The notes beneath the pieces were generated by a model. The model was not told the origin of the DNA. It ran no database searches and saw nothing but the letters and a program-made list of their open reading frames with translations. Below are positions 4,053 to 35,818 of a stretch of 64,000 nt of DNA, piece by piece. The position numbers and the translations under genes are program-made. The stretch covers positions 62,001-126,000 of the IMG/VR virus record IMGVR_UViG_3300022752_000015; one strand, 5' to 3'. How positions within the stretch are numbered: position 1 is the first letter of the stretch; the number at the start of each line of letters is the position of its first letter.

Positions 4053-4586
4053 TCAGGTTCCTATGCCTAACAAAGCCGCTGCTAAAGCATTCATGACTAT
4101 TGCTTCTGCTTCTACTTTGGCTGAGGCTTCATCTTTTCCTGATTTGACTTCACTTTTGATCAGCTGCGCAACTTGCTGTTTAATCATAGGTCCTAAAGTT
4201 GCTTTCAATTCAGCTGCGGCATTTTCAGCAGCTGCACGAACACCTGCGTCTTTAATGTCTCCTATTGCTTTTGCAGCTTCTTTACCAGCCGTTGCTATTG
4301 GTGCAACAATTTTTTGAGCAGCAGCTGAAATTTCTTTCCCTGCAGCTGTGGCCTTTTGAACTACTGCATCTTTAGCAGCTCCAGCGGCAGCTCCAGCTTT
4401 TTTGCCAGTTTCAGATCCAGCTCCTTTTAATCCTGCCCAAAGGTTACCAAGAAATCCTTCAGCCATAACCTCTTCAGCCAAATACATGGCACGGGCTTCT
4501 GACATTACCTGACCAGGCTGGACTGGTGTTACTCTTTGGTACTCTTCTTTAATGATTCTTCTAAGCTGATTATGAGTTATCTTCAT
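4053..4586 (-). CDS. Ala-rich hypothetical protein with an N-terminal QLRRIIKEE motif (possible internal head protein)
   Basis: MKITHNQLRRIIKEE N-terminus; Ala/Lys-rich helical body. Confidence 0.7.
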   Translation of the reverse strand: MKITHNQLRRIIKEEYQRVTPVQPGQVMSEARAMYLAEEVMAEGFLGNLWAGLKGAGSETGKKAGAAAGAAKDAVVQKATAAGKEISAAAQKIVAPIATAGKEAAKAIGDIKDAGVRAAAENAAAELKATLGPMIKQQVAQLIKSEVKSGKDEASAKVEAEAIVMNALAAALLGIGT

Positions 4587-11502: not shown

Positions 11503-12474
11503 TTAGTTACCAGTCACGTATTTCGCGCTGTCAATACAGTTCATTGAATAAAAAAATGCCTCAACATCAAAATCGTTGATTCCTTCTTTGAGGAGGGCTT
11601 TGATCAATCCGATCTTATTAACGTGCGGAACGAATGTATCTAACGTATGTTGCACTTTAGAAATTTGAGATGCTGACAACATACTACCATCTAGGTATAC
11701 CAATCTCCAATTTCTGTTGATCAAATCTTGATTGTCTACGACCTTCTTATAAACAGTAGATTCTCCAATCCTGGATTGACAAAACGAAATGATGTCCTCT
11801 ATCAAGAGATCATCATCTGTTCCCAATATAGGAAGTTTTTTAGAAACCGTCTTAAACCCCAACCCTTTTACTCCAGGAATGTTATCTCCAGGATCTCCAC
11901 ATAACGCCTTGGCGGCTGCGAAGTTGTTGGGTTTTATTCGGAATTCTTCAAAGACGTCATCAACTGTCAAGACTTTTTTCTTATGAAGAGAATAGATCGA
12001 AGTATTTGCATCCAACAGTTGATACATGTCTTTGTCGGAAGAAACTATGATCTTTTTATTTTGCTTAAATGGCCCCGAACAAAGAAACGCAACTATGTCA
12101 TCACCCTCGCAATCAGAGGCGTAAACTTGGCAAACAGGAGAATTTTTTAGCATGTTCAATAGAGAAATAAGCTGATGTTTCCTGTTCTCTTCTGACTCAG
12201 GTATATCATCTCCGTAAAAACGGTTGAGCTTCTCAGGACGTCTACCAAGCTTATATTCAGGATAAATTGATCTACGTCTTAGAGAACCCCCGCCTTCCCA
12301 TGCCACGCAAATCATTGAAGGTTGTAACTCAGTTGTGATTCTTTTCAACGTCTTAAGAAAACCGATGCAACCTCCCATTTGATAGCCATGGGTCGACATT
12401 TGTGGGTATGCCGCCCATGACCTAATAAAAAGATTTGCTCCATCAATAACCAAGATGGGACGATCTGAACTCAT
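11503..12474 (-). CDS. 5'-3' exonuclease / flap endonuclease (T4 RNase H-like)
   Basis: IDGANL, EGDD, SSDKD, GDPGDNIPGVKGLG (H3TH). Confidence 0.92.
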   Translation of the reverse strand: MSSDRPILVIDGANLFIRSWAAYPQMSTHGYQMGGCIGFLKTLKRITTELQPSMICVAWEGGGSLRRRSIYPEYKLGRRPEKLNRFYGDDIPESEENRKHQLISLLNMLKNSPVCQVYASDCEGDDIVAFLCSGPFKQNKKIIVSSDKDMYQLLDANTSIYSLHKKKVLTVDDVFEEFRIKPNNFAAAKALCGDPGDNIPGVKGLGFKTVSKKLPILGTDDDLLIEDIISFCQSRIGESTVYKKVVDNQDLINRNWRLVYLDGSMLSASQISKVQHTLDTFVPHVNKIGLIKALLKEGINDFDVEAFFYSMNCIDSAKYVTGN

Positions 12475-12767
12475 GTTTTGCCTGTAGAACCGAATCCACC
12501 ACTGCCGCGGGTCGTTGAAGACAAACTGTTGGTTGGTTGGAATATCCCACGAAAAACTCGAGAAAATACCAACTGTGCAATCCTATCGCCTTTATTGACA
12601 ATAAATTCTTCGTCACCTGTGTTCAACAAAATGACCTTAATTTCCCCTCGATAGTCACAATTGTGAACAAGAACATCATTACAAAAAAAATTGTGATTAT
12701 TTTCTACTGTAAGATCATAACATCGTTCATTATGCGTTGTTTTATTTTTAATTTTTACAAACTTCAT
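12471..12767 (-). CDS. dut: Split-intein C-half (36 aa) fused to dUTPase C-extein (62 aa)
   Basis: MKFVKIK...CYDLTVENNHNFFCNDVLVHN|CDYRGE...GDRIAQ...RGSGGFGSTG. ATG 12767 follows GGAG-A6; Asn/Cys junction at 12660/12659. Confidence 0.93.
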   Translation of the reverse strand: MKFVKIKNKTTHNERCYDLTVENNHNFFCNDVLVHNCDYRGEIKVILLNTGDEEFIVNKGDRIAQLVFSRVFRGIFQPTNSLSSTTRGSGGFGSTGKT

Positions 12768-13674
12768 TTTTTTCTCCAAAAAAATTAATGATATATTTTT
12801 TCGATTCATCAAGGCTAAAAGACAAAAAATAGCGTGCATTAATGCTAAAGGCGAACAATTCAGCAGATGAACTTTTTCTTTCTATTTTATTATCGTTGAA
12901 GCTAAATCCTTTTAGCTCTAAAATGCATTTTTTGTCATCGTTGTAGATGTAAAAATCAGGAATGTAACGTCTTGTTTTATTGTTTTCATCGATATAAGAA
13001 ATTTTATACCCATGAGCTTTTGTCCATGAAAGCGATGTTGTGTCAAGAAATGTCATTAATTCAAGTTCCCAAGAAGAATCGTAAAATTCTTTTGATCCTA
13101 TCTTAGTAAGATACCACCCTTTTTTGTATCTATTTGATGATCCACAACGACCTTCTAAAATAGCTTCAGAAACACCTTCACTAATCTTTTGTCTCCATTG
13201 CTCTTTTCTTTCATCCGTCCATGACAGACGAAATTTAAATTCATCAGAGACGTGTTCTTTCATAAAATCACTATGATTTTTTAGATAATCATGAGTTTCT
13301 TTTGTGCGACCTGTCAAAAGCGCAGAATTTCTTTTTCCAACCGCAGCAACACGTTCATCATCATGCTTTGTAAGTCCATCATTCCAGTTTTTATGACCGT
13401 TTGCATATGTGTTTGATATTATTTCAGATTGTTTTTTTCGAAATGCATCCGTTCTATGAGTAACTTGACGAGATTCGCACATCTTCTTGTGATAGTCGGG
13501 ATTGGACCAAACATTACGATTGTTTTTTGAGACCAACTCTTTTGCTTCAAGAGATTTTACTTCTGCATCTTTGAACCGCAGTCGATATTCTTTTGTTGAT
13601 ATTTTGTGAGTATTACGAAGATGCTCAACTATAGAAAACTTCTTTTCTAGATTACAAATTAGACATTTCACCAT
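12748..13674 (-). CDS. Putative homing endonuclease: C2H2-like Zn finger, NUMOD-like repeats, PD-(D/E)XK (TnsA-like) domain
   Basis: CLIC...HLRNTH; WNDGLTK; DSSWE...YIPDF...ILELKG; visibly AT-rich; lies between the intein halves. Confidence 0.82.
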   Translation of the reverse strand: MVKCLICNLEKKFSIVEHLRNTHKISTKEYRLRFKDAEVKSLEAKELVSKNNRNVWSNPDYHKKMCESRQVTHRTDAFRKKQSEIISNTYANGHKNWNDGLTKHDDERVAAVGKRNSALLTGRTKETHDYLKNHSDFMKEHVSDEFKFRLSWTDERKEQWRQKISEGVSEAILEGRCGSSNRYKKGWYLTKIGSKEFYDSSWELELMTFLDTTSLSWTKAHGYKISYIDENNKTRRYIPDFYIYNDDKKCILELKGFSFNDNKIERKSSSAELFAFSINARYFLSFSLDESKKYIINFFGEKNEVCKN

Positions 13675-13679
13675 GATAA

Positions 13680-14219
13680 TTAAGTATCATGGTCAATTAC
13701 AATTTCATCATCATATGATAGCTCATCAGCTCTTTTAAGCCCATCTCGAGTATAAATCATCGTTCCTGGAGTTACGCACAGTTCTGTGTCATCATCAAAA
13801 ACAAATTTGATTACATCTTTTTCACCTACATCAACAATTGCGCTTATCACATCGCTTTCGACACAAAGAGTCTGTTCATTCATAGAAAACACGACATCAT
13901 TTATCTTCAAATCAAATACTTGCTTTTTTCCAGCAGGAGTTGAAATCAAACAATTTGAAGTAAAACAATCTACTGTTCCTGGAGAATTAAGAACAGTGAT
14001 ACCATATTTGGCAGCTAACCCAGATCTAGGTCTGACTTGGGCTTCAAATCCAGGAGGCAGTTCAATCTTTAACCCAGTCGCTACAGTAGCCCTTTGACCA
14101 GGTTTGATCATTAGGTACTCGTTAGCGTATACGTCGCACCCTGCTGATCCTTGAGTCTGATACTTAGGCACCAGATCATCGTCATCCACTTCACATCGAA
14201 TCCAGAATATATCACTCAT
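13680..14219 (-). CDS. dut: dUTPase N-extein (84 aa) fused to split-intein N-half (95 aa)
   Basis: AGCDV, RPRSG, GTVD then intein block [14 protein letters not shown] and block B-like [11 protein letters not shown]; stop at 13680; Cys1 at 13967. Confidence 0.93.
13681..13687 (-). promoter_or_regulatory. ATACTTA candidate promoter motif overlapping the IntN stop codon
   Basis: GAT ACT TAA (D-T-stop) contains the motif; the endonuclease ATG follows 6 nt later. Confidence 0.45.
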
Positions 14220-15387
14220 CGGATACCCCTCCTTCACCGTCTCCGTCGCCAGAAGGTTCTCCGCCGATCGTTACAAGAGCAGAATCGATAGCCGTCAAAA
14301 GATGACTGCGATATTTTTCATCTTTCAGCATGTCGCCAAATTCTGATTTATAGAATTTTTTCTCTACGACAACTTCTCCTGTTTTTGAATTGATGACCGA
14401 AAGTTCTTTCCAAGCTCCTTCGCCTGAAACATTAATCTCAAGACCATCTCTTTTCACAGGACCATTGGCTTTACAGTGTGAACGAATCTCATCAAAAAGG
14501 TATTCATCTTCGACAATTCCTTTACCGAAGATAATATCGAACTCGCATTTTCTAAATGGAGCTGCTACCTTATTCTTCTTGATGGTTGCAATAACGTGAA
14601 TACCCACTACGTTACCATTTTTGTCTTTTACTTGAGTACCTGAACTAAGCTTAATCCGCACTGAGGCATGGTAAGGTATGCTTTTACCGCCGGGCGTGAC
14701 ATCAGGATCTCCGTGCATTACTCCAATGGCAGTCCTCAATTGATTTAAACACAAAAGAGTTACATTGTTCTGTCCAATGACGCCCGTGATTTTTCGCATA
14801 CCCTTGGAAATAACTCGGGCTTGAAGACCTATTGTGTTGTCTTCATACTCTCCATCTAATTCTTGTTTCGGCGAGGTTGCTGCAACAGAATCCCAAATAA
14901 CTAAAATTGGAATATTCTTATCTACTACTTGTTTTGCTTTTAAGATCGTAGATTCGATGATAGAAAAAACCTCTTCAGTACAATGAGAATCGCAATAGAC
15001 AAACCTTTTGCGAACATCGATTCCCATGTTCGCTAGCTTTTGAACAGGGACAGAATTTTCTGTATCTACGTAAACCACAAGACCGCCCATGCTCTGAACT
15101 ATTGATGCTGCATGGTATGCTAGATGAGATTTTCCAACCGAAGGAGTTCCAGAGATTTCTATGATCCTACCTTCGGGGTACCCGCCTCCTAGAAAATTTC
15201 TAATCGCGTAATTTAGTTGAATAGATCCCGTGTCTATCCAACGCTTCACGATTGTAGGAGCGTCCATTTCTGCTAGATTGTAAGCAATTCTAGTCCCAAA
15301 CTCTTTATTGATATCTCTAATAAGCTCAGCAGCAAAATCTACCTCTAATTTTTTTGATGATTGTGCGTCTTCTTTTGCTTTAGCCAT
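14212..15387 (-). CDS. recA: RecA/UvsX recombinase
   Basis: [52 protein letters not shown]. Confidence 0.95.
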
Positions 15388-17759: not shown

Positions 17760-18986
17760 TCAGATTTTTTCTAACTTCAACGGAAATTCAAAATCATAAC
17801 CTGGAACTTTAACTGACCCGACGGATTCCACATCTTTTATCCTGTCCTCTCTTACGTCTAGTATGAGAGCATCGTGAAGAACAAAAAGAGGTCTGATCCC
17901 GTCGTTGCCCAGCAACGTCAAAATCTTGTTGAATCCTACGAGAGCCACATCGACGCCCGTGCTCTGAGCGTAATAATTGATGAAGATGTTGTCCTGCGGG
18001 CGAGAGACCTCGATCCTTCGACCGTACTTGTTCGTGATGAAACCCTCACGAGAAAATTGCCTCTTTAGGTTAGAAAGCAAGGCTCGAGTGTCTATGATCT
18101 CTCCAACTTTGCTTATGAAGCGTGATAGGTCATCGTTTGACATGCCGAGAGTCAAAGCCAGGGCATTTCTGGAAGATCCATACAGTTCAGCCAGAACAGC
18201 TGCCTTCACTACGTTCCTGGGTATGCCACCCAAACGTGCCGCTATATCCGCGTAGAGATCGGCCGCTTCGCAACCTCTGCCGGATTCATAGAGCAGAATC
18301 CTCGCTTCAAGAGATGAAAAGTCCAATGAAACCACGTATCCTCCGATCGTCGAAGGTTTCAACAACCTCCTGTTTTCTTTCTTCAGCAACAGAATATTTG
18401 GACCTGAGGACACCGTGAGACGACCCGTCACCGTCCCAAACCTATCGTACGTGATAGGATGAGCGTATCCTCCTGCGCGGGCCTTGAACGTGGAAACGAT
18501 TTGAGAATTGTGAACTGATTCGCACAAGGCTTCAACCAATGCACCGTCAACCTTTGCAGGTTTTAATGATGACAGAAGAGAGGAAGCATGCATCCAAATA
18601 TTCTTGTAATATTCGATTGTTGTTTCATCAACCTTCTTTTTTGAAAAAGCCACGAGTGAATCTAGATATGTCCTGTAGATCGTCGGAGGCAGCACCATCG
18701 ACCATGGAGGAATCCCTTCCTTCATCAAAGAACGAATCGACCTGACGTGTGCCTCAGGAGGTTGAGGGACCTCTGACTTGTCATGCAACATCTGCAGAGT
18801 ATTCCAACAGAAAGTCGCGTCCTCACGGCGGCCCAGGGAACATCGCCAGACTTCATCAGGAATCTTTTTGATTCTCGAGTAACCATCATCCGACACGAGA
18901 AGGTGTTGGTTCGTTCCCAACAAGGACGATTCTAGAGCAACATCCATGCAACATATATGGTAACACGTCGATGAGCGGATTTTCAA
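17760..18986 (-). CDS. Short family A DNA polymerase (polymerase domain only)
   Basis: TVTGRL, motif A DFSSLEAR, motif B RNVVKAAVLAELYG, NYYAQ, motif C LHDAL; no clear exonuclease domain. Confidence 0.8.
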   Translation of the reverse strand: MKIRSSTCYHICCMDVALESSLLGTNQHLLVSDDGYSRIKKIPDEVWRCSLGRREDATFCWNTLQMLHDKSEVPQPPEAHVRSIRSLMKEGIPPWSMVLPPTIYRTYLDSLVAFSKKKVDETTIEYYKNIWMHASSLLSSLKPAKVDGALVEALCESVHNSQIVSTFKARAGGYAHPITYDRFGTVTGRLTVSSGPNILLLKKENRRLLKPSTIGGYVVSLDFSSLEARILLYESGRGCEAADLYADIAARLGGIPRNVVKAAVLAELYGSSRNALALTLGMSNDDLSRFISKVGEIIDTRALLSNLKRQFSREGFITNKYGRRIEVSRPQDNIFINYYAQSTGVDVALVGFNKILTLLGNDGIRPLFVLHDALILDVREDRIKDVESVGSVKVPGYDFEFPLKLEKI

Positions 18987-33110: not shown

Positions 33111-33384
33111 TCATGTGAATCGCCTCAGTCTAGATGGCACTTGGGACCTGGCTGCTCCCATCATGGACCTGGCGTCTGGTGTGTTGTGATGCAAAGCCTT
33201 GGACGTGCTCTTCTGCTCATCCTGACCCTTCGCAAGCTCCTTGCTGATTCTATCGATGAACCAACGTTTATACGCAACCGGGAGAGCGTAAGCCTCCCGG
33301 TACGTAAACCCGCAATAATACATCAACAGAAATGCTGGTTCTAGAACCAATGCTTCTCTATCTTGCGGCTGAAGGCCAAAGAAA
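33111..33384 (-). CDS. Frameshift-accessed extension of the tail assembly chaperone (gpGT-like)
   Basis: The +1-frame ORF FFGLQPQDRE...LMYYCGFTYREAYALPVAYKRWFI overlaps the chaperone 3' end and has only a weak TTG start. Confidence 0.65.
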
Positions 33385-34236
33385 CGAGACTCCAAGGGGC
33401 ATATTCACCTCCTCTTCGTGACCGCACGATGGACACGACGTCTCTTGCTTCATGGTGACACCAGGCTCGTTATTTCTTATGTAGTTTCTGAGAGCCAAGG
33501 AGTCAGCCGCAGGCATCAGCTTGATAAAGTTCTGTATCTTGAAACGATCTTCCACACCATCGACGGAAATGATGGCTTGTTGCAACGATGTCGTCACTGT
33601 CGAATCGGACTGAAGACCCAACTTCTTCTGCTTCTCTGCGAGATGCAAGATCTCTTCCTCGTCACGACCCGTCGGGAATTTGAAGACCACCTTCTTCTTC
33701 GTCTTAGGCAACAAGAACTCAAACGCGTTCGTCCCCTTGAGAACAGGATCGATCTCAAGCCGCTTGATGGGAAGCTCCGTCAGATTGAAAGAATGCTGAC
33801 CCTTCGCCTCACACTCATTGCACTCCATCTCGGTCATGTACTCAGGACCATATCCCGTGATGCGGACAGCGACCATGAGAGCATTTCGATCACCAACGAG
33901 AAGATCTTGAGGATTGACGGAACGATCGATCAAACACGCCTTGATGAGCTCAGATATGACAGTGCCCTTCTTGATGAGAGCACGAGAGGTGAGAATGTCC
34001 TCCTCACGAGCCGTCATAGGCCTGATCTCAACGACGTCCTGATCGTGCAGCGATGTTCCAACAGGATAGATCTTTCCAGCGCTGGGCAGAGGAACCAGCT
34101 CGGTCGGGATGTCCAAACCAAACTCTGCCTTCAGCTTTTCTGCGGCCGTCTGCGACGGCATGCGGGGATCCACACCAGCTGGGACCGAAGCCCCTGAAAA
34201 AACTGCGTTTCGTTGCTCACGTTCTTCTGTGCTCAT
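33358..34236 (-). CDS. Tail/baseplate assembly chaperone (T4 gp26/gp51-like)
   Basis: VPLPSAG..Y, IRPMTAREEDIL, two CxxC motifs, ends SFLWPSAAR; lies between tube and tape measure. Confidence 0.75.
   Translation of the reverse strand: MSTEEREQRNAVFSGASVPAGVDPRMPSQTAAEKLKAEFGLDIPTELVPLPSAGKIYPVGTSLHDQDVVEIRPMTAREEDILTSRALIKKGTVISELIKACLIDRSVNPQDLLVGDRNALMVAVRITGYGPEYMTEMECNECEAKGQHSFNLTELPIKRLEIDPVLKGTNAFEFLLPKTKKKVVFKFPTGRDEEEILHLAEKQKKLGLQSDSTVTTSLQQAIISVDGVEDRFKIQNFIKLMPAADSLALRNYIRNNEPGVTMKQETSCPSCGHEEEVNMPLGVSFLWPSAAR
33376..33384 (-). other. Candidate +1 ribosomal frameshift site TTT_CTT_TGG
   Basis: Frame 0 reads F-L-W-P; the +1 frame reads F-F-G-L. A tRNA-Phe on UUU can re-pair on UUC. 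Confidence 0.55.
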
Positions 34237-34361: not shown

Positions 34362-35285
34362 TTAGCTTGACAAAAATCTATGAGATTTTTCTGTCCATAT
34401 TTCAAATATGAAACCATTTTCGGTTGCAAATTTTTGAGCAGATTGAAATTTGGCGACATTTTTGTCATGAGTAACATGGCAATTTGGTTTAAATTCTACA
34501 ATACGTTTTGTTCCGTCTTTATACTCTATTAAACAATCAATGATGTAATGTCTAATTTTTCCTTCAAATGAATATTCGATGTTGTAAGGTTCAAACGTAT
34601 AAGAAATAACATCTTCGTTTGATTCTAAATGTAGAATCGCATTTAATTCGAATAATGACCTGTAATAAACATTAGGCTTAGATGATTTCTTAGAGTTATT
34701 GAAATATCCATGAACGCGAGTGCATTTAGTCAGCAATCCATTTTTTACTCTCTCAGCTTGCTCCAAGCTTTGACGTTCTCGATTGGTTTCTTTGCCCCAA
34801 TAAGATTTCATATGCTCTGAGATTTTTTGTTTATGAGATTCTGATTTTGATTTTCCTGTTAAAGATCTGGATATTTTTTCAGATCTTTCAGGAGTATTCA
34901 TCTTTTCAATGATTGATGCTATTCTTGGATCGTCCTTCGTTAATCCCTTGCACCATCCTTGAATTTCACCATTTTCCCACATTTTTCTTCTGGTTGTGAG
35001 ACTTTTCTTGAAGGCTTCTTTGTTGTGACCCCAATTATTGTTCACTTTCGAAGCATGACCCCATACAAACTTAGAGTATCCATTCACCAATCCGTTAAAT
35101 TTTGTATCGGAACCACACCCACATTCGCACGTTGGTTTAATTCCTTTTAGCACAACTTGAATGTATAAATCTTCGCTTGAAATATCATGTTTTTTTGAAG
35201 CATGAATTCTAAGGGAATTGATGCTTTCAATTTGAAAGTCGCATTGGGGACATTTAAGCATAAAACCTCTGCAGCTTGACGCCAC
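34362..35285 (-). CDS. Free-standing putative homing endonuclease (Zn finger, NUMOD-like repeats, TnsA-like PD-(D/E)XK)
   Basis: CPQC...HASKKH, CECGC, WCKGLTKDD, YRSLFE...EPY.I.Y...YIID...IVEFKP; AT-rich. Alternative start at ATG 35261. Confidence 0.8.
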   Translation of the reverse strand: MASSCRGFMLKCPQCDFQIESINSLRIHASKKHDISSEDLYIQVVLKGIKPTCECGCGSDTKFNGLVNGYSKFVWGHASKVNNNWGHNKEAFKKSLTTRRKMWENGEIQGWCKGLTKDDPRIASIIEKMNTPERSEKISRSLTGKSKSESHKQKISEHMKSYWGKETNRERQSLEQAERVKNGLLTKCTRVHGYFNNSKKSSKPNVYYRSLFELNAILHLESNEDVISYTFEPYNIEYSFEGKIRHYIIDCLIEYKDGTKRIVEFKPNCHVTHDKNVAKFQSAQKFATENGFIFEIWTEKSHRFLSS

Positions 35286-35329: not shown

Positions 35330-35818
35330 CTAGAACTGCAAAACGCAATTGTCGAAACGGAGAGTTAGTGATATTTCCGTTGGGTTTCCGTCCTCGTATG
35401 TGACCTCGTTGAAGTTAGCATCCGTGATGAATGCGCCTTTGATGTCCCAGAGTTCGATGACGGTGCCGACGGGGTCGAGCATCTTGAGTTGGATGTCACG
35501 CTTGTAGAAATCGGCGTAGCCGCTGCGACCTGAAACAGATTCGAAGTGGAGGCGGATCCATTCCATGACCTGTTGTGCGCCTGATGGCGCGATTGGGTCG
35601 TGGAGGGTGACGCCCATGGTGCTGAACGTCGTTTTGCCTGCGAGGTAGCGGGTTGAGTTGATGAACGGGACTGGGACTTCTTCTGTCGTGATTTGTGGAC
35701 GAGCCGCTGTCTTGATGATGTAGGCGTCGATGCCTTCAATCATGAGGACCCAGCGGTTCTTACGCTTTGGTTCAAACTTGTTTGGAATCATTGACGTGAC
35801 GTCAAGAGTTTCGGCCAT
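35330..35818 (-). CDS. Tail tube protein (T4 gp19-like)
   Basis: FEPKRKNRW, LHDPIAPSGAQQVMEW, YKRDIQLKMLDPVG, LRFDNC. Confidence 0.9.
   Translation of the reverse strand: MAETLDVTSMIPNKFEPKRKNRWVLMIEGIDAYIIKTAARPQITTEEVPVPFINSTRYLAGKTTFSTMGVTLHDPIAPSGAQQVMEWIRLHFESVSGRSGYADFYKRDIQLKMLDPVGTVIELWDIKGAFITDANFNEVTYEDGNPTEISLTLRFDNCVLQF

Follow-up and report, generated by a model that had tools for sequence, protein, structure and literature searches.

Fractured phage genes and the broken dut locus

Fractured genes carrying split inteins were described by Dassa, London, Stoddard, Schueler-Furman and Pietrokovski (2009, NAR; PMC2677866), whose set comprises the gp41-1 to gp41-8, NrdA-2, NrdJ-1, IMPDH-1, DnaE, ligase and terminase loci. 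In these loci three ORFs lie on the same strand of a phage DNA-metabolism gene, the N-intein being about 90-100 aa and the C-intein about 36-40 aa long, and the nuclease is read in a frame of its own, its 5' end being marked by a hairpin. The dut locus reported here, found in a 64,000-nucleotide stretch of viral DNA (the window), has the same layout, with a hairpin at the 5' end of a nuclease in its own frame and intein halves of 95 and 36 aa. It fits that study's definition of a "fractured gene" (PMC2677866): both halves of a phage DNA-metabolism gene are fused in frame to intein halves on one strand, and the nuclease lies unfused between them. The earlier note on this DNA, made from the sequence alone, had likened the locus to known fractured phage loci, and the comparison with the published set bears this out. 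Neighbouring genes code for gp32, a RecA/UvsX-like protein, a 5'-3' exonuclease, a DnaB-like helicase, RNR, PolA, tail sheath and baseplate proteins, and the host of the locus is a large (about 210-280 kb) T4-like freshwater phage. The elements of the layout are as follows:

14219..13680, minus strand: dUTPase N-half plus N-intein, 179 aa (84 aa of dUTPase and the 95-aa N-intein)
13674..12748, minus strand: nuclease, 308 aa, free-standing, in frame +2 relative to both halves, with its own ATG
12774..12777, minus strand: GGAG ribosome-binding site of the C-half, embedded in the nuclease ORF at its 3' end and separated from the ATG by 6 nt
12767..12471, minus strand: C-intein plus dUTPase C-half, 98 aa (36-aa C-intein and 62 aa of dUTPase)

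All three ORFs agree, base for base, with the coordinates given in the earlier note. Mechanically called ORFs reach further upstream, to a GTG at 14237 (N-half) and an ATG at 12839 (C-half), but the start codons of the note were preferred because of homologue lengths. The separate GGAG proposed for the C-half was read directly at 12777-12774, and a similar element, TTTTTGGAGAAAAA, precedes the C-half in the lineage L014, whose nuclease belongs to a different family. The nuclease ORF starts 5 nt past the N-half stop, these being the sole non-coding bases, and its 3' end overlaps the start of the C-half by 20 nt; the claim that a 308-aa nuclease in another frame fills the gap is thereby upheld.

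The insert measures 1308 nt (436 codons), and the N- and C-halves share one frame. In a window of metagenomic type this shared frame might suggest that a contiguous gene, with or without an intein, was broken up by an error of sequencing or assembly. However, the N-half frame meets 17 stop codons across the insert, so that a single sequencing error, the fault considered in the earlier note, cannot fuse the ORFs, and the nuclease lies in another frame. Furthermore, the identical arrangement is present in at least nine independently assembled contigs from several samples (JGI, NCBI, ENA and Logan assemblies) as well as in six IMG/VR genomes, and the same architecture recurs in many diverged lineages. 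An artefact is thus effectively refuted, and we give it a negligible probability.

Hardly any greater weight can be given to the idea that the insert is a self-splicing group I or group II intron with a nuclease ORF, the dUTPase mRNA being mended at the RNA level. Group I introns that hold endonuclease ORFs are indeed common in phage genes of nucleotide metabolism. Dassa et al. (PMC2677866) also noted recA introns with ORFs of the Vsr-like kind. Nevertheless, no Rfam intron model matched the region 12000-14700 at E <= 1, the only match being a spurious one to a snoRNA; on either side of the nuclease ORF the sequence codes throughout for the intein halves, in frame and with conserved protein motifs, and merely 5 nt are non-coding, which leaves no room for such an intron, just as the earlier note had argued.

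Exteins and intein halves

The break divides the dUTPase and the intein into the following segments:

13968..14219, minus strand: dUTPase N-extein, 84 aa, with motifs 1 and 2 and the first half of motif 3, ending in GTVD
13680..13967, minus strand: N-intein and TAA stop, 95 aa, with Cys1; block B reads TPGT, with Thr for His
12660..12767, minus strand: C-intein, 36 aa, with block F YDLTVENNHNFF and block G VHN, followed by Cys
12471..12659, minus strand: dUTPase C-extein and stop, 62 aa, with Cys+1, the remainder of motif 3 and motifs 4 and 5

In profile searches, the N-half matched positions 10-88 of 150 of PRK00601 and positions 5-70 of 129 of the Pfam dUTPase profile, while the C-extein matched positions 88-149 of 150 of PRK00601, an equivalog profile, which puts the breakpoint at profile positions 88|88. 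The N-extein is 100% and the C-extein 98% identical to the intein-free homologue P0005. When joined (84 + 62 residues), the exteins make up a dUTPase of 146 aa, as long as its nearest intein-free homologues, and the 146-aa intein-free alleles are 98.6% identical to it. All five dUTPase motifs are intact and in order (AGCD, RPRSG, GTVD|CDYRG, DRIAQ and RGSGGFGSTG), in agreement with the normal-length product foreseen in the earlier note. The same note took Cys+1 to stand in place of the usual Ser, and this has to be corrected, as the closest intein-free alleles read GTVDEDFRG, with Glu at that position. Among dUTPase homologues Ser, Glu, Cys and Ala are all found there, and GTVDCDYRG is present in contiguous natural dUTPases too.

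The codon of Cys1 (13967-13965) follows immediately after GTVD. The C-intein scored 25.5 bits against TIGR01443 (intein_Cterm; cutoff 15.6), was also matched by PF14890, and resembles the C-termini of the solved NrdJ-1, gp41-1, DnaX and DnaB inteins. The N-intein was matched by the Hint and intein_Nterm profiles only weakly, below their curated thresholds; it aligns to the Ssp DnaB mini-intein and the NrdJ-1 intein, with the block B histidine (His73) opposite Thr. The search with intein HMMs proposed in the earlier note therefore places one half above a curated cutoff and the other below it, and the alignment of both to solved inteins supports its reading of the two segments as intein halves. 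Within block B (TxxH), TPGT of the window aligns to TANH of Ssp DnaB, so that the Thr is present and the His replaced. This replacement is a property of the family: in 51 members the histidine column holds Thr in 32, Gln in 7, Lys in 6, Ser in 5 and His in 1, the histidine thus being absent from 50 of the 51. Cys1, on the other hand, is present in 51/51 members and [IVL]HN-C in 59/59.

The loss of the histidine bears on whether the halves splice at all. They might only hold the dUTPase fragments together non-covalently, with no peptide bond formed. A precedent exists in a fragmented RNR, since the NrdA of phage Aeh1, broken up by mobE, is reportedly assembled by interaction domains without splicing. 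The residue that the dut family lacks promotes the first splicing step and is essential in many inteins, although a few natural inteins without it still splice (PMC6333167). With the block B histidine missing, splicing of the dut intein could be slow or need compensation. Mere docking is nonetheless unlikely, as docking domains would not need the Cys1, His-Asn and Cys+1 that are invariant across lineages of only 30-50% identity. In addition, the break lies in catalytic motif 3, and an unexcised HINT domain of ~131 aa would presumably sit in the active site. We consider non-covalent assembly improbable and infer from the conserved residues of the two halves that the dUTPase is restored by trans-splicing.

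Nuclease, junction hairpins and mobility of the cassette

Two further features concern the ORF between the halves and its start:

12748..13674, minus strand: putative endonuclease with a C2H2 (Ros/MucR-like) zinc finger, a helical middle part and a C-terminal PD-(D/E)XK (TnsA-like) domain
13667..13696, minus strand: RNA hairpin whose loop contains the N-half stop codon and whose 3' arm contains the nuclease ATG

Residues C4, C7, H18, H23, E203, P239-D240 and E253-x-K255 are invariant in 13 nuclease homologues. Against PF08722 (TnsA-like N-terminal domain) the nuclease reached 20.6 bits, below the cutoff of 26.5; a paralogue in the window (34362-35285), which aligns to the 308-aa nuclease at E = 8e-6, scored 47 bits. 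The AF2 model has a pLDDT of 74 overall and 83-94 in the nuclease domain, and the top folds returned by Foldseek were those of TnsA, Bax1 and Hjc, with probabilities of up to 0.99 and weak E-values (2e-3 at best). No Vsr or DUF559 profile match was found in the window nuclease, which carries a canonical E...PD...ExK motif instead. All nuclease homologues with examined context, including the most distant ones, lie inside fractured dUTPase genes. The intervening genes of L014 and L015 show weak Vsr, DUF559 and MTES_1575 matches and no BLASTP match to the window nuclease.

The hairpin has a predicted stability of -12.3 kcal/mol (z = -4.0), which none of 200 shuffled sequences equalled. Its stem is also present in L012 and, in a weaker version, in L003; in other dut lineages hairpins cover the nuclease RBS. 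A terminator-like hairpin at 13997-13972, made by synonymous changes, is absent from other lineages and was treated as incidental for that reason. Promoter and terminator scans gave counts no higher than in shuffled sequences.

The search for intein-free dut alleles proposed in the earlier note yielded a nearly isogenic contig, L017, with an exact empty site: it lacks precisely 1308 nt, and its flanks are ∼99.7% identical to the window (1680/1686 identical positions upstream and 970/978 downstream). Ten of the 14 mismatches fall within 23 nt, from -13 to +10 of the insertion point (binomial P = 2e-18), and two more lie outside this patch on each side, in the 1686 upstream and the 978 downstream nucleotides. 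The two parts of the patch are:

13968..13980, minus strand: upstream half, with four synonymous changes relative to L017 (13980, 13977, 13974 and 13968)
12650..12659, minus strand: downstream half, with GAA->TGT (Glu to Cys+1), TTT->TAT (Phe to Tyr) and two synonymous changes

Another genome, L018, shows zero differences from the window over the cassette and C-extein; the identical tract extends over 12323-14109 of the window, and upstream of 14110 the two genomes are strongly diverged. A near-identical phage with an empty site shows that the element moved recently. The 23-bp patch would be explained equally well if the cassette had been lost, by recombination with a phage free of the intein, and not gained. 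Taken together, the patch at the empty site and the identity of the cassette amid upstream divergence suggest that the window nuclease may act in homing.

The best explanation of the locus is, with high probability, a mobile split-intein cassette in dut whose halves splice in trans and whose nuclease confers homing. The 1308-bp cassette (N-intein, free-standing putative homing endonuclease and C-intein) lies inside motif 3, between GTVD and (E/C)D(F/Y)RG. A single transcript of the operon would give two polypeptides, Dut(1-84)-IntN and IntC-Dut(85-146), the 95-aa and 36-aa intein halves of which would associate into a HINT fold. Splicing through Cys1, the terminal Asn and Cys+1 would then release a trimeric dUTPase of 146 aa whose motif 3 reads GTVDCDYRG, the absent block B histidine presumably being made up for by other means. 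The zinc-finger/PD-(D/E)XK nuclease would cut the intein-free dut of co-infecting phages at or near the insertion site, and the ensuing repair would copy the entire cassette together with a short flank. The hairpin, which holds the nuclease ATG 5 nt past the N-half stop, probably restrains or couples nuclease translation.

Family, significance and comparison with known systems

The fractured dut locus is not rare. At least 33 clusters (50% identity) consist of Dut-N fused to IntN, with the intein at the protein C-terminus, and all of them are split; the family is large in metagenomes, where some members are automatically annotated as "intein/homing endonuclease". Contiguous dUTPase inteins, the other kind of allele that the earlier note had suggested looking for, were found neither among length-compatible matches nor among the best 150 of the 153 matches of an exhaustive search. 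Ten candidates, which were non-terminal or ambiguous matches, turned out to be other Hint proteins or helicase N-halves.

The fate of the nuclease in this family bears on yet another reading, according to which dut is dead, having been inactivated by a mobile nuclease cassette, the intein halves are relics and the host dUTPase is used. dUTPase is indeed dispensable for some phages, and intein-free and intein-containing phages coexist. Against this, neither half contains a frameshift or stop in any of the more than 20 loci examined, while the nuclease between them decays: L003-5 carry it whole, in L032 it has fallen into three fragments, and in L029-31 and L036-38 a deletion has left only 31 aa of it, the intein halves being intact throughout. 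The dN/dS values of inteins and exteins are well below 1 (IntN 0.15 and IntC 0.01 for L003 versus L029, the only informative pair, since dS is saturated in several segments of the window versus L012 or L003). As all five dUTPase motifs are also preserved and the family has persisted through deep divergence, a dead gene seems very improbable.

In deposited phages, blastn returned only an 85-bp match at chance level, no record covered the intein part in a tblastn search with the C-half, and the nuclease gave only weak partial tblastn matches. No description of a dUTPase intein was met with in the published literature searched. dUTPase thus seems to be an undescribed intein host, which, as far as tested, fits the suggestion of the earlier note that the insertion site may be new.

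Protein ligation relies mainly on naturally split inteins and, to our knowledge, every fast or orthogonal pair in use derives from a handful of natural loci. Candidates are readily supplied by a ninth or later host enzyme that has dozens of divergent pairs (Cys1/Cys+1, with a C-half of 36 aa). The family-wide lack of the block B histidine raises the question of how the N-S acyl shift is activated, and the 23-bp footprint offers a testable guess at the nuclease target. One family also holds the life cycle of a fractured gene, from the empty site through a fresh invasion with its 23-bp footprint and nuclease decay to nuclease loss with the split intein kept, and this supports the model of Dassa and Pietrokovski in which free-standing nucleases create split inteins. 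We propose more tentatively, as something that may well be true but that we do not yet favour, that the dut intein is the founder of a large, ancient, split-only intein clade without the block B histidine. If so, splicing in this clade would rely on an undescribed compensatory mechanism, and its spread would be due to a homing-endonuclease family, so far unrecognised, that joins a Ros-type zinc finger to a TnsA-like PD-(D/E)XK domain and serves motif 3 of dUTPase alone; the clade would provide new orthogonal split-intein pairs, and L017 and the window would capture a homing event in nature, one before and the other after it.

The NrdJ-1 (8ubs), gp41-1 (6qaz) and Ssp DnaB (1mi8) inteins are the best solved-structure matches of both dut halves and share with them Cys1 of block A and blocks F and G (YDLxVexNHNFF...HN), yet they are only distantly similar (E about 1e-3 to 0.15) and come from other host proteins, and the block B His of Ssp DnaB is Thr in the dut intein. 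The cyanobacterial DnaE intein, like that of dut, is known only in split form, and its host function depends on trans-splicing, as that of dut probably does. In contrast to the dut halves, those of DnaE come from distant loci without an intervening nuclease gene; the DnaE intein is found in cells and not in phages, and its block B is canonical. Orthologues of the Tko CDC21-1 intein are cited in PMC6333167 as lacking the block B His and splicing via a compensatory mechanism; these are archaeal contiguous inteins of another host protein, likened to the dut intein by this feature alone.

As for the nuclease, TnsA, Bax1 and Hjc share with it the E...PD...ExK motif and, judging from the model, the restriction-endonuclease-like fold. 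The window nuclease differs in having no transposition or repair context, and its nuclease domain is preceded by a zinc finger like that of Ros/MucR and by a helical region that looks DNA-binding. I-Ssp6803I is a PD-(D/E)XK homing endonuclease, likened to it by nuclease class alone.

Among the fractured genes of Dassa et al., the variant gp41-7, which has no homing endonuclease, finds its counterpart in the L029-type dut loci, and the Vsr-like nuclease type is shared by the dut lineages L014 and L015. In contrast, the host enzyme types named there do not include dUTPase, the gap before the nuclease is 27-51 nt as against 5 nt in the window, the nucleases are GIY-YIG or Vsr-like whereas that of the window combines a C2H2 finger with a canonical PD-(D/E)XK (TnsA-like) domain, and the dut intein is set apart by its absent block B His. 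The fractured layout itself is already known; dUTPase seems to be new as a host, and the C2H2/TnsA-like nuclease and a block B without histidine set the locus apart from the fractured genes described.

Organization of the dut locus

Three tightly packed ORFs occupy the minus strand, bounded on one side by a RecA/UvsX-like gene (15405-14212) and on the other by a 5'-3' exonuclease gene (12474-11503):

14219-13680, minus strand, N-half, 179 aa
13674-12748, minus strand, nuclease, 308 aa, in a frame different from those of both halves
12767-12471, minus strand, C-half, 98 aa

The N-half matches positions 10-88 of 150 of the dUTPase equivalog profile PRK00601 and, after GTVD, continues into a 95-aa segment whose first residue is Cys and which gives weak matches to Hint and intein_Nterm. 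Residues 1-36 of the C-half pass the curated cutoff of the intein C-terminal region model TIGR01443; this C-intein ends in VHN and is followed by Cys and then by PRK00601 positions 88-149. The exteins (84 + 62 aa) add up to 146 aa, and the nearest intact homologues are equally long. The nuclease ORF starts 5 nt past the N-half stop and overlaps the C-half start by 20 nt, and a GGAG lies 6 nt 5' of the C-half ATG. All coordinates, lengths and motifs reported in an earlier note on this DNA, made from the sequence alone, agreed with these ORFs, profile matches and homologue lengths. The note had also described Cys+1 as a replacement for the usual Ser; in the closest intein-free alleles, however, it is Glu that Cys replaces, and Ser, Glu, Cys and Ala are each found at this position among homologues.

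The possibility that a sequencing error had separated fused ORFs was ruled against by the 17 stop codons across the insert in the N-half frame and by the exact N-half protein on at least nine contigs (from independent assemblies of JGI, NCBI, ENA and Logan, up to 278-282 kb long), every one of which retains the three-ORF arrangement unchanged. The cassette is also identical in six IMG/VR viral genomes. The fractured dut locus is therefore real and not an artefact. A self-splicing intron had been dismissed in the note, and indeed no Rfam intron model matched the region.

A hairpin at 13696-13667 (-12.3 kcal/mol, z = -4.0) places the N-half stop in the loop and the nuclease ATG in the 3' arm. 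The same stem is present in L012, another contig with a dut locus, and a weaker version in L003, while strong hairpins cover the nuclease RBS or 5' leader in L006 and L009. Hairpins upstream of fractured-gene nuclease genes were reported by Dassa et al. (PMC2677866). We infer that nuclease translation is restrained or coupled to termination. Promoter and terminator pattern scans performed no better than on shuffles.

The empty site and mobility of the cassette

In the intein-free contig L017 (Logan SRR28411072), RecA and the exonuclease gene accompany an uninterrupted 146-aa dUTPase. On either side of the insertion point the contig closely matches the window, with 1680 of 1686 nt upstream and 970 of 978 nt downstream the same; what it lacks is precisely window 13967-12660, a stretch of 1308 nt (436 codons). 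Of the 14 mismatches, ten fall no more than 13 nt upstream or 10 nt downstream of the junction (chance of such clustering ∼2e-18): four third-base synonymous changes in Pro-Gly-Thr-Asp upstream and, downstream, GAA to TGT, which turns Glu into Cys+1, TTT to TAT, which turns Phe into Tyr, and synonymous changes in Asp and Arg. This patch looks like short co-conversion of donor flanks in homing, and equally like a target site rendered uncuttable. The cassette may instead have been lost by recombination with an intein-free phage; however, since all 18 closest intein-free alleles carry Glu at the Cys+1 position, gain is the simpler direction. Synonymous changes beside the intein (13972-13997, minus strand) also make a 9-bp stem and T-rich run flagged as terminator-like by the scan; a weaker stem forms in the empty-site allele, and other lineages do not conserve it.

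The comparison with L018, a 278-kb contig, points the same way as the empty site: there are zero differences over the cassette and C-extein, the identical tract spanning window 12323-14109, whereas the two are strongly diverged upstream of 14110 (N-extein dS = 0.26). The sharp mosaic boundary at ∼14110 lies within the dut N-extein, with nearly identical cassette, exonuclease and DnaB genes downstream and strongly diverged remaining N-extein, RecA and gp32 upstream, a pattern suggestive of a recombination event some 140 nt away from the intein site. The dut family also offers an exceptionally clear natural record of mobility.

The family of split dUTPase inteins and its nucleases

The N-half search returned other Dut-N + N-intein proteins at 38-72% identity, in which the junction is always G-T/I-V/I-D|C and the 90-96-aa intein part forms the end of the protein, and the C-half search returned dozens of clusters of 96-104-aa C-intein + Dut-C proteins. 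A HMMER search with the N-intein alone against 1.84 billion cluster representatives gave 153 matches, at least 33 of which are dUTPase N-halves with the intein C-terminal; none of the tested internal or ambiguous matches is a dUTPase, so that a dUTPase intein in contiguous form was not seen in this set. Among the best 80 IMG/VR loci by C-half search, 25 are fractured: 14 with the window nuclease family, 3 with a Vsr-like gene, 6 without a nuclease and 2 cut by a contig end. An intervening gene separates the dut halves in all nine further lineages examined (L003-5, L006-8, L009-11, L012, L014, L015, L034, L048/49 and L076/L101), the phage backbones of which differ considerably. Fractured dut is a widespread family of freshwater and marine phages and is not unique to the window.

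Phages with more distant fractured dut are intein-rich (L009 780-2954 and 5863-8025; L006 843-3299), with an IMPDH bearing a Hom_end_hint insert directly downstream of dut, and with large proteins matching LAGLIDADG_3. In addition, P0268, P0286 and about 20 other proteins (314-336 aa) are ResIII/DEAD helicase N-terminal fragments that end in a dut-related N-intein and resemble the N-halves of a further family of fractured genes. In the window itself, a DNA polymerase A ORF (17760-18986, minus strand) of just 408 aa covers 76-352 of the 381-position Pfam domain and may be one of separate pieces encoding this enzyme.

In 13 homologues of the window nuclease (36-78% identity) Cys4, Cys7, His18 and His23 are invariant, as are Glu203, Pro239-Asp240 and Glu253-x-Lys255, which indicates a C2H2 finger followed by a canonical PD-(D/E)XK core. 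Ros/MucR matches to the finger are weak. The AlphaFold model (pLDDT 74 overall, 83-94 within the nuclease domain) has TnsA, Bax1, Hjc and related nucleases as its first structural matches, with modest E-values, and the Pfam TnsA-like N profile scores 20.6 against a threshold of 26.5. A paralogue elsewhere in the window shares this architecture and aligns to the nuclease at E = 8e-6:

34362-35285, minus strand, paralogous endonuclease, 307 aa, with C2H2 finger, repeats and TnsA-like PD-(D/E)XK (PF08722, 47 bits)

With a T4 baseplate-like gene (33358-34236) on one side and a gp19-like tail tube gene (35330-35818) on the other, it looks like an intergenic free-standing homing endonuclease. All nuclease homologues examined in context, the two most distant included, are located in fractured dut genes; in L006-8 that position is filled by a short form of 177 aa, made up of finger and nuclease. 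The start of the L012 nuclease (4058-4130) was miscalled at an internal ATG, and moving it to an in-frame ATG 72 nt upstream brings the zinc finger back, as confirmed by a Ros/MucR match; automated gene calls therefore understate conservation of the finger.

The intervening gene of L009, L014 and L015 encodes a Cys-rich protein unrelated to the window nuclease. Its C-terminal ...PD...EFYG.YWHC core (missing in the L009 copy) and weak Vsr, DUF559 and MTES_1575 matches suggest that it belongs to the Vsr-like family of Dassa et al. The same split intein has thus been colonised by two nuclease families or more. Between the exonuclease and DnaB genes, L004 (5297-6109) and L005 (5276-6109) have an additional ORF of 270-277 aa with a faint NUMOD3 match. 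L003, which is otherwise similar, and the window lack it, so it probably represents another polymorphic free-standing homing endonuclease.

Conservation of the halves and comparison with known systems

Within the L003 lineage the nuclease is intact in L003-5, split into three ORF fragments in L032 and, by deletion, shrunk to the final 31 codons in L029-31 and L036-38, yet neither the intein halves nor the exteins are damaged in any of them. Between L003 and L029 the N-intein has a dN/dS of 0.15 and the C-intein one of 0.01. Cys1 is present in 51/51 family members and [I/V/L]-His-Asn-Cys in 59/59. The motif predicted for the spliced product, GTVDCDYRG, is found in contiguous natural dUTPases, hence its Cys is compatible with dUTPase function. 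Judged from these sequences, selection acts on the intein halves and not on the nuclease, which argues that the halves are needed, and for chemistry rather than docking alone; together these observations point to trans-splicing. Nuclease decay is also seen in a second lineage, where the Cys-rich gene of L010 (4703-5074) is frameshifted or truncated (123 aa) and that of L009 (4703-5308, 201 aa) already lacks the C-terminal Vsr-like core.

The main ground for caution over splicing efficiency is the missing block B histidine, which is essential in many inteins (PMC6333167). In the HMMER alignment of a 12-residue stretch of the window N-intein with ATANHRFLTIDG of the Ssp DnaB mini-intein, Thr stands opposite this His, and the column holds Thr in 32, Gln in 7, Lys in 6, Ser in 5 and His in 1 of the 51 family members. 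As natural inteins without it are "a very small subset", e.g. Tko CDC21-1 orthologues (PMC6333167), a diverse split-intein family of this kind is noteworthy. A fractured gene with trans-splicing is very probably the explanation of the dut locus, and the note's proposal of a split-intein dUTPase with a free-standing nuclease is supported by the profiles, the L017 empty site and the split family.

No paper linking a split intein with dUTPase was found in the full-text literature search, InBase and subscription-only papers being outside its scope. Some papers contain both an intein and one of the names of the enzyme; in those read the words have nothing to do with each other, and the titles and abstracts of the others give no hint of a dUTPase intein. 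Two papers that survey or engineer inteins do not mention dUTPase, and no genome of a 50,697-record phage collection holds the C-intein/Dut-C half; one N-half had already been labelled "intein/homing endonuclease" by the JGI pipeline. The novelty of the host and site, suspected in the note, thus stands within the literature and collection searched.

The layout of the locus is that of fractured genes, the hosts of which named in PMC2677866 are gp41 helicase, IMPDH, DnaE, NrdA, NrdJ, DNA ligase and terminase; the words dUTP, dut and deoxyuridine are absent from its text. The nucleases described there are GIY-YIG and Vsr-like, whereas the window's nuclease family is neither. dUTPase is a new host and insertion site of this known layout, with a new nuclease type and the lack of the block B histidine as its variant features.
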